Origin: Paraphysomonas bandaiensis
Lineage: Eukaryota > Protista > Chrysophyceae
Direction of reading: 5' to 3'
Length of the DNA: 10,720 bases
Assembly (NCBI GenBank): GCA_965644295.1
Contig: CBFFRP010000171.1
Span: forward strand, 1-10,720
The position numbers and the translations under genes are program-made. The notes beneath the pieces were generated by a model. The model was not told where the DNA came from, did no database searches, and saw nothing but the letters and a program-made list of their open reading frames with translations. The first letter of the stretch is position 1, and each line of letters begins with the position of its first letter. Below, piece after piece: positions 2,999 through 10,720 of this stretch.

Positions 2999-5900
2999 TC
3001 AGTCAAATGTGTAGCACACAACACTTGAATGGTTTTCTTTTGATACAAAAGTTGTAACACTTGAATCGAAATCAAATACAGCCCCACAAAGTTTGCTAAA
3101 CAGATCAATATCTATTAAGCTAACGACCCAAGGAAATCGCCTTCGAATAAGACTCGACACTTTGTCTTCCATTACTTTCACCCGCTCAGCTTCAATCCCA
3201 CAAAAACCTTCGGCAGCTGCTTGAGAGGTACATGAAATGAATATGCCAACCGTTAAGACGAGTCGTGATATCAGAGATAGATTTATTCGCCTCGAGGGGT
3301 TCCGACAAAGCGGGGACGTTGCGGTTCCAATGTCAGCTGAAGCCGAGTCTCCAGAAATAGATTCCGGATCAATGCATACAGATACACATTTACCGCTCTG
3401 TATTTCTGAAAGGCTATAACGAAGAGCTGCCACTACAACTCTTGTAATCTGATCAATTTCCATATCATCGTGCAAAAAACAGTGGTGTTGAGTATTCGAG
3501 AGGAATGCTTTGCAGTACGTTCCTCTAGAAAAGGTGCACTTATTACTGAGCGCTTCTTTGCTGTCATTCGAAGAGAGATAACGCGAGATGAATCGTCCGA
3601 TACGAACAACACTCACACAGTCACTACTATTTCTAATGTATACAGATGATCCTTTCTCGAACAAAGTAACAGAATATTCCGTGTCTAACGACAAACGCGA
3701 CAGAGATACGCTCCTACCTAGCCTATCTGTCATCAGTAAGTAGGAAAGGGGCGGCAATGAGGACGCGAAAGCGCTGCGAATGGATTTCACAGTCATACGG
3801 GTAACTGCCATGCTGCCATGTTTCTGTACACTATCAGGCGTCGACGCCACAAGGGCATCCACTGATGATACAAGTTCATCTAAAGTGGATATTCCTGGCA
3901 ATTTCTTCCGCATGCATTGATGAAGCCACGATGTCGAATGAGTTACACCACCTCCACTGAAAGGAGAAAACATTGACGGTTGATGCTCGGATTCAAATCT
4001 ATCGTCTCTACTGGGATGAGCAATAGGAACTGAAAACATACATCCTATGCTGAATGAAACATATGACCCCACTAACCACGATCCCTCGCAGGTATACGCA
4101 GTATCGTTCTGAGGTTTTTGTTGTACACTACTAATAGATGTTGTTCTGGACTGATGACCCAATGATAGTTCATCGGCTCCAAATATATTACTCACTGAAG
4201 TGTCGGAGTCCACATTTTCAGCGCCAGTAGGTCTCGCCCTCGCTTGAGTTGATAGATCTTTGTTCGCAAAGCGATACGGCAGAAGCCGTTTAATTATATT
4301 GTGTACGCTGCTCTCCAGTGTGGCCAATGCAGTTCGATGCTTAGGAATTTGCTTTAGTGTACCGTCAATCAATTCCGAAATTATCTTTAGTGATGATCCC
4401 ATTGAAGGAAGATCGACATCCACTCCATAAGCAGTAAGCTCTGCACTAATATCAGGTGGGTTATACCTTTCCATACATAGCATGCAAAACATTTCCGTCC
4501 ATGACATATCTTGAAACAAAAAACGTCCAGTTGAGAGCTCGAAGAGAAGACATCCCAGTGACCAAATATCACATCCGTATGTTGGCCTTTCTGTGCTGAC
4601 TCGAACTTGCTTGCTTTTAATTCCCTGACAACTTTCATTGATGCATAGCATTTCGGGACTTTGTATCGGCAATGTACCCCTGCTTCGTGTTTTCATGCTA
4701 TGCCCAAAGTCGCTACCAGAAATATGTAACGACTCTCCAAAGTCGCCTAGAAACACACGGCCCGATAACTTATTCTTTAACACTGCATCTATCATGATAT
4801 CTAACCGAGGTTCATCGCGCACTATGAAGTTGCTGCATTTGATATCATAATGAACTATATGCTCCGCATGAACAGAGCGAACTATTGATACACATTCCGC
4901 GTATACACATAAAAAAAGGATAAACTCATCCACTACACCCATAGCGCTATTTATATCTTTCGGCAGATCCCTGTGACTATCTACTAGCATACGCATCGTC
5001 CAATCTTTCAAATCGTATTTTCCTTGCTCCATAACAATCCAGTACTCACTCTCATGGATTCCAAAGTTCAGAATGTCGCACACACCTTTATTTTTGGAAA
5101 GGCTCTCCAAGCACGACACCTCAGAAAATACGTCAAATATAACAGGCGGGTCATGTAAAGAGCGCTCTCGAGTAATTCGTTTGACAGCATAATCTTTGTC
5201 TTTTCCTGGAAGCAAAGCCAATCGACACTCTGCCGGACATCTTACTTTGTATACGCTCCCAAAAGCTCCAGAGGATATTTTATTGTTTTCGCGTATGTGT
5301 AGTGGCAAGCATGACACAGAAAAAAAAATCGGTGACGACAGCTTTAACAGACGCACTGCCGTAGGACCAATATACGATGCTGTCGACATCATATGCGCAG
5401 GTGAAAGTTCAGACAACCCAAGCGACAAGTACTCACGCACTCCAAACAGTAATTCCTGGACAAGATTATCGGAACTGGCCCCGCCCATAGAGTCATCGAA
5501 AATATCACCCTCGTGTGACACTTGCGACTCAACTCGCGACGGAGTACTCATCGACCTCGCTGGTGTACCTATCCCCTCAGATTTTGACACTTGAATAGAT
5601 GATGGTATTAGTTTCTGCATATCTGTGTGGGTCTCAGGCAGTTCACAGAGCGCGCGATATATGAGGATGTTCACAATAACCTCATAAGTGCAGCACAATT
5701 CATTCATGACTGTCATTTCCTTGGAGACATCGCTCACAGCCACTTGAATAAGTTTCAGTGCATCTTGGCTTGATTGCGAATTCGACATGTGAATGAGCGA
5801 CAATAGCGAATTGCTTGATGAATAAGAAGGCAGGCGACTTGACTTAGGCAAACCATATCCCGACGAGCGCCGCGTTGACCAACCAGCTGAGTCACGCCAA

Positions 5901-8900
5901 GACTCCACTCTCGTCAGGGTGCTGGATGAATCATCTCTCGCAAAATCGCCAACGAGCTTGTCCACTGTACCCCTAGGAGACAAATCGTTTCTACTGTCAT
6001 CAGCATATTCCTCAAAAATATTCTGCTTTGATGACTCTCGCAGTAAAGATCCCGAAAGTGAACCTCCGGCTCCATGATCCACTGATGAGGACAAATCTAA
6101 ATTTTCAAGGTGCATACGAGGTACAACAACACCAGACTTTGATTGCGACTGAATAATTGGAGGGGTACCGCCACGTGGACGCTCAGCAGATATATCTGTG
6201 CTACTCGGCCTACTCAAAACCAAAGGAATTTGAAATATATTGCAATCGTCATCATCATCTTCAAAACTAGCGTCCAGGTTGTCATCTATACTGACAACGG
6301 ACTGAAACGATGCTTCACGCCTCGTTTTGGTGAGTTGTATTGGGGATGACTTCGGAGACGTGATAGAATTCGGCTTTGTGCAATTTTGAGAAATCAATAC
6401 TTCTCTCGGAATGGACGACGCAGTTGGAGAGGGACTACTAAACGTCATCGATACTTCACTTCCAACAGGAGTAAATGCATTGGCCTGCGTCAAAGCTCCT
6501 GTCGCATTTGGTGGCGTCGTGACCTGCACAGCAATACCACTTCTTGTGTTGGCGTGGGCACGATCTAATCGCTCCAAGAGCTTATCTTCATCGTCCTCTC
6601 TCTCTCCGTCTTTAGATATGTTCGAATGCTTCCTGTCACTTCCTATGTCTTTATGAGCAACCTTAGAAAATTCACGCAAAATATCTTTGGGATCCTGACT
6701 CAGACGAGGAGAAGGGTCCACCCGAGCAGTGGAAATGCGACTGGAAACTCTGCTGCGATTCTTTGTCATACGTATGTCACTCGGGGGTACACCTTCCCTA
6801 GTATCACCATCAGTAAAGAGAATAGTATAGGTGAATGTCACAGATAGCTTCGAATCAGTATTAGTCTCTATATCGGGAGCGCATAGAGCACGGCCCATCA
6901 CTGTGCCAGGAAACCATCTCTGTGATCCGTTCTGCACTGTACAAAGAGCATCCACATTGTCCCCAACAGCAAACACGCCATCTCCATTGGCTTGTGCGGC
7001 AGATTCTCTTGCCGCAATATGAGGGCTATATGCCCTACTGCCAGTACTGAATTTTCTTGGCCGAGTTGGACCCATATCAATGCTTGTATCAAGACTGCGG
7101 CAACTATTGTGTGCGCCTGTAGAAGGAGGTCGTCCAGTTACACGGCTGTTAATAGTAGTCGACATCTGTGTCAAACGAACCACAAAGTTGTTTTTCTTCA
7201 CCCAAGACTCGCTGAATTTCGTCAAATGCTAAATGCATGACAAAGGTTACAATATACCAGAATAAAAAATTGACGACATTAGACGTACACAGTGTGTATT
7301 ATACCTCAGCCAACTCAACGAATATATAGTCCAGAGTCGGAGTAAAGAGCCTTGTCTGTACTCCAGCAGCTCCTTGTTTATGATGAGGAGTTACAGTGAG
7401 AAGACATAAGAACAAGAGCTCCCCAAGCAATGACGACAAACACTTGAGTTTGTATGAAGCTGTAGGTTGAAGGGAGACCATTAGGGCCTCGTGAAACGCT
7501 GCTGTCCATTCACTCTGACGAGGTAAGGCGTGGCTTTACATAGTTTAAGGATGGAAATAGATTGATAGTACAGCAGGTTACCTGACAGATAACATCGTTG
7601 ACGCTGAAAAATCTCCACACATGGAACCATTGATTAGAAATTGAAATCCTACCAGAACATATGACAGTCTGCTCCACATCGGTAACCCAGAAGCTCCGCG
7701 AGACTTTCGTTGTTGCCGTTGAGTACAAGGTTTTAGGACTTGGGATTCACTATGAGAACGATGCGATGGTGACGCAGAACCAGGTGTCGTTTTGAGTTGA
7801 GGTGAATGGATGAGAGCCGAGAGTTCTTGTGGAGACGGGGTGGTGGTTGACAGCAAACGGTAAACGGCAGAAGAACACATGCGGGCTACAGCAACTCGCA
7901 GTACTCCAGTTAATAATGATTCCGATATAGTATTCAAGCAGGTGTCACACGCTGTCCAGAATGCCATAACTGGCGGCGCTGCATAAGGAAGGCCATATAT
8001 ATCTCGCATTAGCATTACAATAACAGAAACAGACTGCAACGCCTTAGAAATAGACTGTACCCGTATCTCATAGGCCTTGTCATTCGGATCCACATTATTG
8101 TCTATCGTCTTGCTGTCCTGGGCAGCTAAGTTTACACATGTCTGGGATATTGTTTGGGTTGACGTAATACATTCTAATAGCTGTGACGCTCGAGCGCTAG
8201 CCTGACACCACACAACCCTGGTCTGGTCATCATTGAACTCTATATGGGGCGAGAGAATGTGTAAGGCAGTGAACAGTCCTGTCAGCGCACATATCACATT
8301 CGTTTCAAATGTCATCTGCATGGATACAATTAACAATCTTTCAAGGGTCATGTCCTACGAAAATATACGATTAAATACGAAGTATATTTCACAATTGCAC
8401 TTACCAGTATGCTTCCTATCTCATCGCCAAGTGACAATGGCATAGGATCCAACGATTCTTTAAGCAGTTTGTGAATTCCTTCTAGAAGGTATTTCAATTG
8501 GATTATAACATCCAAAACAGGGTATGGCGACGGTAACTCATGGAATTTGAGATTACGCATTCTAAGAAATTCTAGTAAACAGGAGTATCGACTATGACAA
8601 GTAAACTCCGATAAAGAAATGTGTGCAACAGATGTTGGCTCATGACAGCGATTGAATGGCGATTTAACAGTACTGTGGACAGATATTTCGATGCCCAGAG
8701 ACGCCAGAAATGTGATATCGTTAGGATCAGAATTAGTGACAGCTTCGCCGTTGATGCCGTTAAATCCACCCCCTTTACTTTCAATATTCCGGTTACTTGG
8801 AGACTTTTCAGACGAATAAATATCATCTGTTTCAGATAAGTAAGGAATTATCTTGCTCTTCCCCGAGAATGAGGCTATGCGACTACGCAACCGTGCTTGA

Positions 8901-8923
8901 ATTCGCCGAAATATGTTTTCCAT
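2999..8923 (-). CDS. Large spliced Ser/Thr protein kinase (~1916 aa); exons 8923-8405, 8354-7582, 7533-7305, 7228-2999
   Basis: ORFs 8348-8923, 7578-8351, 7299-7481 and 2999-7225 join in frame across three GT-AG introns (..GSIL|DMTLE.., ..LSV-S-HALPRQSEW.., ..LAE|HLTKF..), 5751 nt in total. Kinase motifs: ISSGAFGSVY, YAVK, HYDIKCSN, DFG, GTLPIQSPE, DIWSLG. The true start is uncertain; 8923 is the first ATG after an in-frame TGA. Confidence 0.9.
4300..5278 (-). other. Protein kinase catalytic domain (non-RD)
   Basis: Subdomains are in order: Gly-loop SSGAFGSV, AVK lysine, alphaC Glu (SEVSCL), HYDIKCSN, LGDFGES, SPE, CDIWSLGCLLFEL, terminal PKHR. Confidence 0.95.
6770..6973 (-). other. Tudor/Agenet-like domain within the kinase
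   Basis: FAVGDNVDA...RWFPGTV...TYTILFTDGDTREGVPPSDIR fits the Tudor-fold pattern F-x-x-G-D-x-V-x-A..W-(Y/F)-x-G-x-V..Y-x-I-x-F-x-D-G..E-x-V..I-R. Confidence 0.75.
7229..7304 (-). other. Spliceosomal intron, 76 nt
   Basis: Minus strand GAG|GTATAA...catttAG|CAT TTG, T-rich, phase 0; it explains why the 1408-aa ORF appears to start at TTG. Confidence 0.88.
7534..7581 (-). other. Spliceosomal intron, 48 nt
   Basis: Minus strand AG|GTAACC...tgtaaAG|C, phase 2. The AAG acceptor keeps the frame; the nearby CAG leads to a stop. Confidence 0.7.
8355..8404 (-). other. Spliceosomal intron, 50 nt
   Basis: Minus strand GTAAGT...ttttcgTAG, AT-rich, phase 0; removal fuses two ORFs in frame. Confidence 0.9.
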
Positions 8924-9300
8924 CAGGTCAGTTCATCCGGTGCACAGTGCATCAAACTATTCAAATATCTGTCGGATCATATCCGGCACAGCCGCTATGC
9001 CACATCCGATACGAATAACAAGCATTCATACTATGAACACAAGACTAAACCATATATCGAGAGTATAGAACACAAGAGTGCGCTCTGCTGTTATACACTG
9101 CAACTCACCAGACGAGGACGTACAGAACGGTACTACAGGTACACACATTCTTGCCATAGGTCCATTTGAGTATAGGGTATACCTGGATACCGTATACCGG
9201 TATACTGCTATATACCAAACAGCCTACGTACGAGTGATGACAATTCGCTGTAGAGAACAAAAATATCACCAATTTCTACAGCATATATATAGGTTTTTTG
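8924..9300 (-). pseudogene. Probable decayed 5' exons of the kinase gene, with a relic 78-nt intron at 9031-9108
   Basis: GTGAGT...ttcaTAG intron of typical size. The phase-0 join reads ..DLWQECVYL*YRSVRPRL|YECLLFVSDVA*RLCRI*SDRYLNSLMHCAPDEL and needs a 5-nt deletion (CTGAC, 8927-8931) to enter MENIFRR. All three minus frames contain stops. Confidence 0.45.
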
Positions 9301-9317
9301 AAGCTCATGCCACTGCC

Positions 9318-9353
9318 GGTCAAAACCATGTCATTGGTCAAAACCGTGTCGTT
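9318..9353 (+). repeat. 18-bp tandem duplication
   Basis: ggtcaaaaccatgtcatt / ggtcaaaaccgtgtcgtt, 16/18 identical; both differences are A/G transitions that give CpG in the second copy. Confidence 0.85.
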
Positions 9354-9715
9354 CCCTTTTTTCAGTTTCTCTATTCAGTTTGTATTTTGAGTGATTATTA
9401 TGATCATATCCAACTTTGTCACTCCGTATCTCCACTGATACAAAACCATCCACACCTATCAGCATATCCTCATGTTTATCTTGCTCTGCTCTTCCAAATT
9501 ATCCAAATTCTTGTGGGGTTTGAGCTAAATACTGCTCCGTTCTGTCCCTCGCATTTCACCTCTCCCGCAACTGATATTCCACGATCCCAACCAACAGAGA
9601 CAGACTTTTAGTGATGGGAAATGGTGTGAATGATGGGTGTTTTGAAAGTGGCGACATCTTACATCTGCTTGTCACCTCCCGTATGTTTCATTGTTGTGAA
9701 TGTCACACTTATAGA

Positions 9716-10100
9716 TCTCTCTGTCGCATGTGTACTGCACATATACACGTCTTAATTATACATACATTGCACAAACGTATGCATATATGTGCTATATATG
9801 TACTGCGCACACATATATGTGCGAATTATATGTATATGTTACATATATAAGTCTCTGTTACATACATGCTGCCCATATATATATATATGTGTGAGTCTCT
9901 GCCACAAATGTACTGCATATATATATATGTGCCATATGAATACTTCACACAAATACACGTCTGTGACACATATATACTTCAAACATCTATGTATGTATGT
10001 CATATATAAACTGCAAGCTTATATATGTCTCTGTTACATATGATGTGCGATATGTAGATATGTCATGTCTATGTTATATGTACACTGCACACATAAAGTG
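9716..10100. repeat. Degenerate subtelomeric minisatellite, ~32-36 bp unit, about 11 copies
   Basis: Recurring GTCTCTGTYACATATGTACTGCACATATAT-like units, for example at about 9716, 9851, 9895, 9959, 10027 and 10067. Confidence 0.75.
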
Positions 10101-10105
10101 TATAT

Positions 10106-10215
10106 CAGGGCTAGGGAACAATATATTGCAATACTATTGTGACGTATCGTCCCACCAATACCTAGTTCAATTGTATTTTAAGAGTCTATTGATACTATTA
10201 CAATGTATTGCAATA
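10106..10215. mobile_element. Probable hAT-like MITE left arm truncated by the telomere
   Basis: Starts CAGGGCTAGG (the MITE at 2522 starts CAGGGCCTGG). Carries repeated palindromic motifs caatatattgcaata 10119-10133 and caatgtattgcaata 10201-10215. No right TIR or TSD. Confidence 0.5.
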
Positions 10216-10218
10216 AGG

Positions 10219-10236
10219 TTAGGGTTAGGGTTAGGG
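10219..10236 (+). repeat. Proximal telomeric block (TTAGGG)3
   Basis: Three perfect repeats directly after ...caataagg. Confidence 0.95.
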
Positions 10237-10360
10237 TTCAAATGTCATCTGCATGGATACAATTAACAATCTTTCAAGGGTCATGTCCTACGAAAATATA
10301 CGATTAAATACGAAGTATATTTCACAATTGCACTTACCAGTATGCTTCCTATCTCATCGC
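10237..10360 (+). repeat. 124-bp exact direct copy of 8304-8427 (kinase exon/intron/exon) embedded in the telomere
   Basis: ttcaaatgtcatctgc...cctatctcatcgc is identical base for base to 8304-8427 (offset 1933). Confidence 0.97.
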
Positions 10361-10384
10361 TTAGGGTTAGGGTTAGGGTTAGGG
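10361..10384 (+). repeat. Internal telomeric block (TTAGGG)4
   Basis: Four perfect repeats between the two non-telomeric inserts. Confidence 0.95.
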
Positions 10385-10399
10385 TTTTATACTATTCGA

Positions 10400-10697
10400 T
10401 TAGGGTTAGGGTTAGGGTTAGGGTTAGGGTTAGGGTTAGGGTTAGGGTTAGGGTTAGGGTTAGGGTTAGGGTTAGGGTTAGGGTTAGGGTTAGGGTTAGG
10501 GTTAGGGTTAGGGTTAGGGTTAGGGTTAGGGTTAGGGTTAGGGTTAGGGTTAGGGTTAGGGTTAGGGTTAGGGTTAGGGTTAGGGTTAGGGTTAGGGTTA
10601 GGGTTAGGGTTAGGGTTAGGGTTAGGGTTAGGGTTAGGGTTAGGGTTAGGGTTAGGGTTAGGGTTAGGGTTAGGGTTAGGGTTAGGGTTAGGGTTAG
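10400..10697 (+). repeat. Terminal telomere array, (TTAGGG)49 + TTAG
   Basis: Perfect TTAGGG hexamers with the G-strand running 5'->3' toward the sequence end. Confidence 0.99.
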
Positions 10698-10720
10698 AGC
10701 AATACGTAACTGAACGAAGT
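10698..10720 (+). other. Oxford Nanopore ligation adapter remnant (artefact)
   Basis: AGCAATACGTAACTGAACGAAGT is the reverse complement of the ONT adapter end ACTTCGTTCAGTTACGTATTGCT. Confidence 0.97.

Follow-up and report, generated by a model that had tools for sequence, protein, structure and literature searches.

The telomere at one chromosome end of the marine protist Paraphysomonas bandaiensis holds an exact copy of part of a protein kinase gene that lies 1.9 kb further in on the same chromosome. The window, by which we mean the whole stretch of DNA analyzed, is the complete 10,720-bp contig C171 of an assembly of 62.6 Mb in 669 contigs. The copy (10237–10360) is 124 nt long, 100% identical to positions 8304–8427 and in the same orientation, and it sits between tracts of TTAGGG repeats. 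We consider it probable (roughly 0.7) that a short telomere end invaded a site in cis, primed a DNA-templated copy there, and was then re-capped by telomerase. This estimate combines two versions of how the copy came to end, to which we give roughly equal odds: synthesis may have aborted after a short distance, or a long copy may have been broken later.

Read outward, the chromosome end is built of several layers (all plus strand). A truncated transposon-like element ends in ...GCAATA at 10215. It is followed by a very short first telomere seed, AGG(TTAGGG)3TT (10216–10238), of which AGG(TTAGGG)3 occupies 10216–10236, whereas the final TT (10237–10238) is common to the repeat and the copy. The first repeat reads TAAGG, possibly because of a basecalling error. 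The copy ends in ...CATCGC, and directly after it comes a second telomere tract, (TTAGGG)4TT (10361–10386). The array is interrupted a second time at 10387–10399, by TTATA (10387–10391) and by the 8-nt leader CTATTCGA (10392–10399), which is a genome-wide mark of de novo telomere starts. The terminal array, (TTAGGG)49 followed by TTAGA, spans 10400–10698. Three successive telomere starts are stacked within 185 nt, with the templated patch located between the first and the second. The second interruption (TTTATACTATTCGA) was also considered as a further local copy, and this was rejected: it has no other match in the window, and its last 8 nt are the leader.

The final 22 nt of the contig (10699–10720, GCAATACGTAACTGAACGAAGT) are non-genomic, and we take them to be an untrimmed remnant of the bottom strand of the ONT (nanopore) ligation adapter. 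The same 22-mer occurs at or near 17 contig ends (e.g., C105, C135, C208, C325, C466, C520, C649, C1, C253, and C439), which indicates that the assembly was made from untrimmed reads and that the end of C171 is a physical molecule end. The TTAGGG array reaches the adapter remnant, and the G-rich strand runs 5' to 3' toward the physical chromosome end. The remnant should be trimmed from the assembly. Near the other end of the contig, positions 636–1100 are a high-copy dispersed repeat (at least 40 copies at 73–80% identity, in many contigs), which probably explains why this small contig was not joined at its left end.

The first telomere tract begins inside a dispersed element of ~3.8 kb with long inverted arms. 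Positions 9307–10215 (plus strand) constitute a truncated arm of this element, as identified by matches to arm pairs in other contigs; identity is 95–98% to the paired arms in C85, C58, C281, C71, and C419, and 91% in C138. All 11 of the 11 intact arms examined continue with TACATATTACAAT after ...GCAATA, whereas the window switches at this point to AGG(TTAGGG)3. The break point, 10215/10216, is an arbitrary internal position of the arm, as is classically seen where a terminal truncation has been capped by de novo telomere addition, in keeping with the setting of chromosome healing in which the earlier note had placed the insert. Telomerase would be the enzyme that added the seed repeats, judging from a register and leader common to at least 45 other starts. 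A break at the inner edge of the inverted arm, as at a hairpin or cruciform, was rejected because all 11 arms run on identically past the break. In the element copies at C85:7170–10943 and C58:16558–20258, the inverted arms exceed 950 bp in length. The central ~1.1 kb of the element is oppositely oriented in these two copies, which suggests flip-flop inversion between the arms.

The donor belongs to a four-exon protein kinase gene (2999–8923, minus strand), the last gene before the chromosome end, which was recognized by its Pkinase domain, open exons, and GT..AG introns. The exons (8923–8405, 8354–7582, 7533–7305, and 7228–2999) are all open in the required phase, as checked exon by exon, and have a coding total of 5751 nt; the introns are 50, 48, and 76 nt in length. 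The Pkinase domain (Pfam) is located in the ORF at 2999–7225, that is, in the last exon, and a Pfam search of the two donor exons returned no match, so that the kinase label comes from the last exon. Intron 1 (8355–8404; 50 nt, GT..AG on the minus strand) is skipped by a 6,016-nt contig of an RNA-like public run, X10, and is genuine and normally spliced; introns 2 and 3 are predicted from the sequence. The gene is expressed, as seen in X10, with a transcript 5' end at ~9114 and an X10 depth of 0 beyond it. The donor segment (8304–8427, plus strand) consists of 51 nt of exon 2, the whole of intron 1, and 23 nt of exon 1. The earlier note's attribution of the copy to the neighbouring kinase gene is thus fair.

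Direct-repeat analysis of the window established the extent and identity of the copy, and a genome-wide search of the 62.6-Mb assembly found the 124-nt sequence in two copies only, both in the window. This count rules out chance and a dispersed repeat as the source of the copy, and both candidates were rejected. Donor and copy are in direct orientation on one contig at a distance of 1,933 nt. At the left junction, TT is shared between telomere and donor; donor base 8303 is a T where the telomere has a G, and of the seven bases left of the junction four match a telomere register, the shared sequence being TT only. The right junction is without homology, the donor going on with CAAG and the copy with TTAG. 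These readings agree with the earlier description of an exact, same-orientation copy lying between telomere tracts, joined through a shared TT on the left and restarting at TTAGGG on the right. The same description had drawn attention to a telomere-like word in the donor (TCAAGGGTCA, 8341–8350). The word is present, 37 nt into the copy, where no role for it is visible. Separately, donor positions 8297–8305 (CATTCGTTT) resemble the leader joined to the start of a repeat (CTATTCGATT), matching at 7 of 8 positions in one register; this resemblance was noticed post hoc and may be due to chance.

Evidence for the two junctions was found in public sequencing runs, in the form of k=31 contigs that were placed up to position 10168 and in which words from the insert fall on the donor. 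The left junction is known from run X2 and the branch at the right end from run X4, these being separate runs rather than a molecule spanning both. X2 is DNA-like, in that the intron is kept and the element arm stands at 12–35x flank depth. An X2 contig carries the loose end GGTTAGGGTTAGGGTTAGGGTTAGGG directly before 8304, which is the left junction at the same base in independent data. The two main X2 contigs overlap by 30 nt at 8304–8333, as at a k=31 branch node. X4 shows 0 differences from the window over 7900–9258 and is probably from the same strain as the assembly. One X4 contig stops exactly at 8427, and its successor begins at 8398. Depth-bin extras of 2.5 and 9.9, at a 6:24 ratio, imply a third X4 contig on 8398–8427 only, with a depth of ~35, as compared with a single-copy depth of 38–40. 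From the contig break and this depth arithmetic, the third contig would represent the right junction and be carried by essentially all cells. Among the X4 contigs, none with the left junction was reported.

These data bear on whether the insert might have been created by a chimeric nanopore read, by the assembler, or by a polisher, in a small contig of low support. The contig is 10.7 kb in length and ends in untrimmed adapter, short-read contigs disagree with the assembly near 9241–9309, and the TAAGG of the first repeat may itself be an error, all of which would suit an artefact. However, the junction of telomere to 8304 occurs in an independent public run at high depth, X4 branches exactly at 8427 with a deduced junction contig at single-copy depth, and a chimera would have to switch precisely twice and come back to telomere sequence. 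The X2 junction and the X4 branch taken together make a single-read, chimera, or polishing artefact unlikely, which answers the concern of the earlier note that the insert might be a product of one read or of polishing; among the explanations considered, we rate this one the least probable. As for the differences themselves, X2 and X4 contigs depart from the assembly at 9241–9309 through a joint that leads from 9299 back to 9241 and adds 15 bases, which implies one more tandem unit of ~74 nt, and through a different continuation after 9309. These differences from the assembly, and those of X2 at 8265 and 8550, may reflect assembly error, a second allele, or strain difference.

X2 differs from X4 in having no branch at 8427. 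Its contig from 8304 reaches 9300 at a depth of 266, roughly what the normal left flank (86.5) and the telomere left flank (~196, by bin arithmetic) add up to, and the depth of the X2 junction is ~2.3 times that of the normal flank. X2 would accordingly contain about two extra copies per genome, each beginning with telomere repeats at 8304 and at least 1 kb long. With respect to the assembly, X2 has a G>A change at 8265 and 17 nt inserted behind 8550. In X2, at least 28 nt of clean telomere repeat precede the junction, versus 23 nt, with a mismatch before them, in the assembly. The X2 and assembly junctions are either descended from one ancestral event, with a change in tract length, or result from two uses of site 8304. 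The perfect identity of the copy had earlier been taken to imply a very recent event. This is not established, as X2 has the same left breakpoint despite a SNP and a 17-nt indel that set it apart from the assembly within 1.4 kb; the initial step may accordingly be older than the separation of the cultures, or it may recur.

The template of the copy appears to have been DNA rather than mRNA, in that the intron, which is spliced out in X10, is kept in the copy and the X2 copies continue beyond the end of the transcript. That the template was unspliced, as proposed earlier from the presence of the 50-nt intron, is borne out by the removal of this intron in the X10 contig. An unspliced RNA template has nonetheless to be weighed: a telomere 3' end could prime cDNA synthesis on nascent sense RNA, by means of telomerase or of the reverse transcriptase of a telomere-attached retroelement, and then return to telomere synthesis. 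The polarity of the copy would fit, as the sense RNA of a minus-strand gene is the right template for a plus-strand copy, and the gene is expressed. However, the intron is retained whereas the RNA contig shows splicing, and the X2 copies with the same left junction pass the transcript 5' end at ~9114 and run into intergenic DNA up to ~9300, which favors a DNA template over RNA. The marks of a processed retrocopy are absent, there being no A-tract at either end, and neither junction has poly(A) or retroelement sequence. We consider reverse transcription improbable.

The reach of the X2 copies also bears on how the 124-nt copy came to its end. The earlier note envisaged a telomere end that looped back, primed synthesis on the gene, and was released. 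Priming in cis has direct precedent (PMC13515017), whereas release after 124 nt is not established, in view of X2 copies that run to at least ~9270. In the longer version of events, the telomere would have copied from 8304 to the chromosome end, perhaps repeatedly, to yield a tandem terminal duplication. A subsequent break in the distal unit, at the base that corresponds to 8427, followed by healing through telomerase, would have left the 124 nt as a stump. This variant of the favored explanation is possible, at somewhat over one chance in three. In its support, the same left breakpoint in X2 continues to at least ~9270 without a branch at 8427, and the X2 junction, deeper than the normal flank, would fit tandem units with identical junctions described elsewhere (PMC13515017). 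Several X2 copies with one identical junction would be what the pseudo-rolling-circle model predicts (PMC13515017). Healed breaks are frequent in the genome as well, and the assembled state could be reached in one step from an X2-like state, while the reverse does not work. Against it, the telomere tract that precedes the copy differs in length between X2 and the assembly, and the intermediate has not been observed in the assembled strain. In addition, patches of similar size with 2-nt overlaps are common in human MM-BIR (PMC13065848), and a short abort needs no extra step.

Both versions of cis-primed copying have synthesis start from the telomere end. Alternatively, a double-strand break in a short telomere might have taken up a free 124-bp fragment of the nearby gene by ligation, without any templated synthesis starting at the telomere end. 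A left junction of 2 nt and a right junction without homology are compatible with non-homologous or microhomology-mediated joining, and Tan et al. discuss such an origin, or one driven by recombination, for cancer sites with 0–3 nt of microhomology and short non-telomeric insertions (PMC11293586). However, the donor is intact, so that the ligated fragment would have to be a copy in any case, and in X2 the same left junction continues for at least 1 kb. The distal tract also resumes precisely in the T1 register, for which a telomere piece ligated at random would have a 1-in-6 chance. Capture by end joining thus appears quite improbable. Templated insertion by Pol theta (TMEJ), whose inserts are usually shorter than 50 nt, come from within a few hundred bp of the break, and show microhomology at both junctions, does not match an insert of 124 nt that comes from 1.9 kb away and has no homology at its right junction.

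The T1 register is common to at least 45 starts of the form ...TCGA followed by TTAGGG, many of which carry a fixed leader. The leader CTATTCGA followed by TTAGGGTTAGGG occurs at 52 exact sites in the genome, as compared with 0 for a reversed control. These sites include true telomere starts and internal spots at which 2–6 repeats lie between unrelated flanks; the leader is often preceded by CCCAAA, and the flanks vary from site to site. In a census, 75 tract starts were in the T1 register. About 36 of these have the full leader, about 12 have partial leaders (...TCGA or ...ACGA) with site-specific bases upstream, and the remainder mostly end in ...GA or ...A. Such a graded pattern is expected if telomerase copies the RNA next to its template when it starts on a non-telomeric end, and the leader is probably copied from the portion of the telomerase RNA that adjoins the template. 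If so, the telomerase RNA would be expected to contain ...CCCUAAUCGAAUAG... beside the template. A search of 20 tag loci against Rfam found no telomerase family, returning only unrelated sub-threshold matches to miRNA models and two tRNAs in a palindrome. The latter is a long, near-perfect palindrome with two inverted tRNA genes (1564–1900 of locus L040, C164:166234–169253), which lies ~35 nt beyond a CTATTCGA(TTAGGG)3 site, the tRNAs being ~70 nt beyond it.

In the window, the last restart (10392) has the full leader. The restart after the insert has none and is exactly in the T1 register after ...CATCGC, the TCG of which matches the leader's ...TTCGA. This start fits telomerase aligning on that end, and the re-extension by telomerase that had been proposed to follow the copy is in line with a tract that starts in the same register as after the genome-wide leader.

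For copying primed in cis by a telomere end, which we favor, the following course of events may be proposed. The chromosome broke inside the transposon-like element at 10215/10216, as the truncation shows, and telomerase, the likely enzyme, would have added about 3.5 TTAGGG repeats to the break. The very short telomere 3' end (...GGGTT) would have looped back to a site 1.9 kb further in on its own chromosome and invaded there, pairing by 2 nt with the TT at 8304–8305, and a DNA polymerase would have copied the minus strand of the kinase gene outward. As anatomy and precedent suggest, this step would be a T-loop-like, microhomology-mediated break-induced replication in cis. The copy ends at the base matching 8427, through either an abort of synthesis after 124 nt or a later break in a longer copy. 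The resulting non-telomeric 3' end (...CATCGC) would have been extended by telomerase, in the register seen after a leader ending in ...TTCGA. Beyond four repeats and five stray bases, CTATTCGA and an array of at least 49 repeats would stem from a new de novo initiation. The end of the chromosome would in this way be a layered record of a break, telomerase, templated DNA synthesis, telomerase, and telomerase again.

Other telomeres in the genome were inspected for similar events. The telomere of C289 (L046, C289:62679–64869; locus ~1377–1460) holds an 18-nt segment, TGGAAGATACTTCTTGAT, which is a same-orientation copy from 62 nt upstream and lies between a short TTAGGG run and a partial leader, TAATCGA, followed by TTAGGG. 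The case is less clean, as the donor is in a subtelomeric tandem repeat of ~115 nt, and it fits a Pol theta templated insertion better than the 124-nt insert does. In C298 (L069, C298:127309–130351; locus ~1457–2460), tandem units of ~690 bp are separated by degenerate telomere-like tracts, and over 218 nt the second unit matches the first at 100% identity. These units resemble the footprint that telomere-primed tandem copying would be expected to leave. For the segments sandwiched in the telomeres of C296 (a 27-mer) and C144 (a 30-mer), no donor was found anywhere in the assembly. A pattern survey of telomere interruptions turned up mostly 1-nt slips in arrays. Among the loci read, capture of nearby DNA recurs but is not the rule.

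The window does not reveal a new kind of mechanism, as the repair process is already known from yeast and human cells. The closest parallel is microhomology-mediated break-induced replication in cis, termed the pseudo-rolling circle, which has been described for unprotected telomeres of yeast, with SUL1 and Y' amplicons, and for human 18p, and whose products are tandem terminal units that share identical junctions (Brewer et al. 2026, PMC13515017). A further hallmark of this process is its dependence on the BIR factors Pol32/POLD3 and Rad51/52. As proposed here, a telomere 3' end invades an inner site on the same arm in a T-loop-like first step, and the product is a direct copy with telomere repeats left at the junction. 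Identical junctions across copies would likewise be a feature of X2. There are differences as well. The assembled strain keeps 124 nt only, not whole terminal units, and the microhomology in the window is 2 nt, whereas the sites invaded in yeast offer internal telomere sequence of about 7 bp. Furthermore, the invader in the window is a seed of ~23 nt on a freshly healed break, and telomerase would have added repeats de novo to the non-telomeric end of the copy.

In size, the copy is closer to the templated insertions of short human telomeres, which are attributed to mitotic MM-BIR and Pol theta, have median lengths of 155–234 bp and a median overlap of 2 bp, and end by ligation or by telomere addition (PMC13065848). 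The 124 nt and 2-nt overlap of the insert compare well with these values, as does its ending in telomere addition. However, the human insertions come from many loci on all chromosomes and lie within telomere fusions, whereas the window has a single insert whose donor is in cis, 1.9 kb off, and whose end stayed free and was re-capped.

The flanking telomere starts have parallels of their own. In the TERC-ITS of rodents and other vertebrates, telomere repeats at repaired breaks are flanked by sequence retro-copied from telomerase RNA (PMC2246262, PMC8537989). Similarly, in P. bandaiensis a fixed non-telomeric leader precedes the repeats where they start, both internally and at true ends. Unlike in TERC-ITS, the RNA source of the leader is putative here, and the leader belongs to the last restart and not to the 124-nt copy. 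De novo telomere addition is known from yeast, Plasmodium, human terminal deletions, and cancer neotelomeres (PMC11293586). As in those cases, repeats were placed on arbitrary non-telomeric sequence, with 0–3 nt of homology, at a terminal truncation; the window is unlike them in having three stacked starts within 185 nt together with a templated patch.

So far, short or unprotected telomeres have been seen to give rise to templated copying mainly in laboratory yeast mutants, chemostat populations, telomerase-deficient worms, and human cells in crisis. The window provides a natural, fixed example in a free-living protist, in which the order of events (break, telomerase seed, DNA-templated patch, and two telomerase restarts) can be read from one stretch of 500 nt. 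It suggests that a seed of ~23 nt is able to prime on its own chromosome, and it shows a route by which gene fragments, introns included, enter telomeres and subtelomeres. A broader proposal is that healing in P. bandaiensis routinely alternates between telomerase, with its RNA-copied leader, and cis-templated synthesis primed by seed telomeres, such that subtelomeres and duplicated gene fragments are built stepwise, 8304 is a recurrent invasion site across isolates, and telomeres are chronological records of repair; we regard this proposal as doubtful. Together with the genome-wide leader CTATTCGA, the chromosome end described here makes P. bandaiensis useful as a natural system in which to study how telomerase and break-induced replication compete at new ends.
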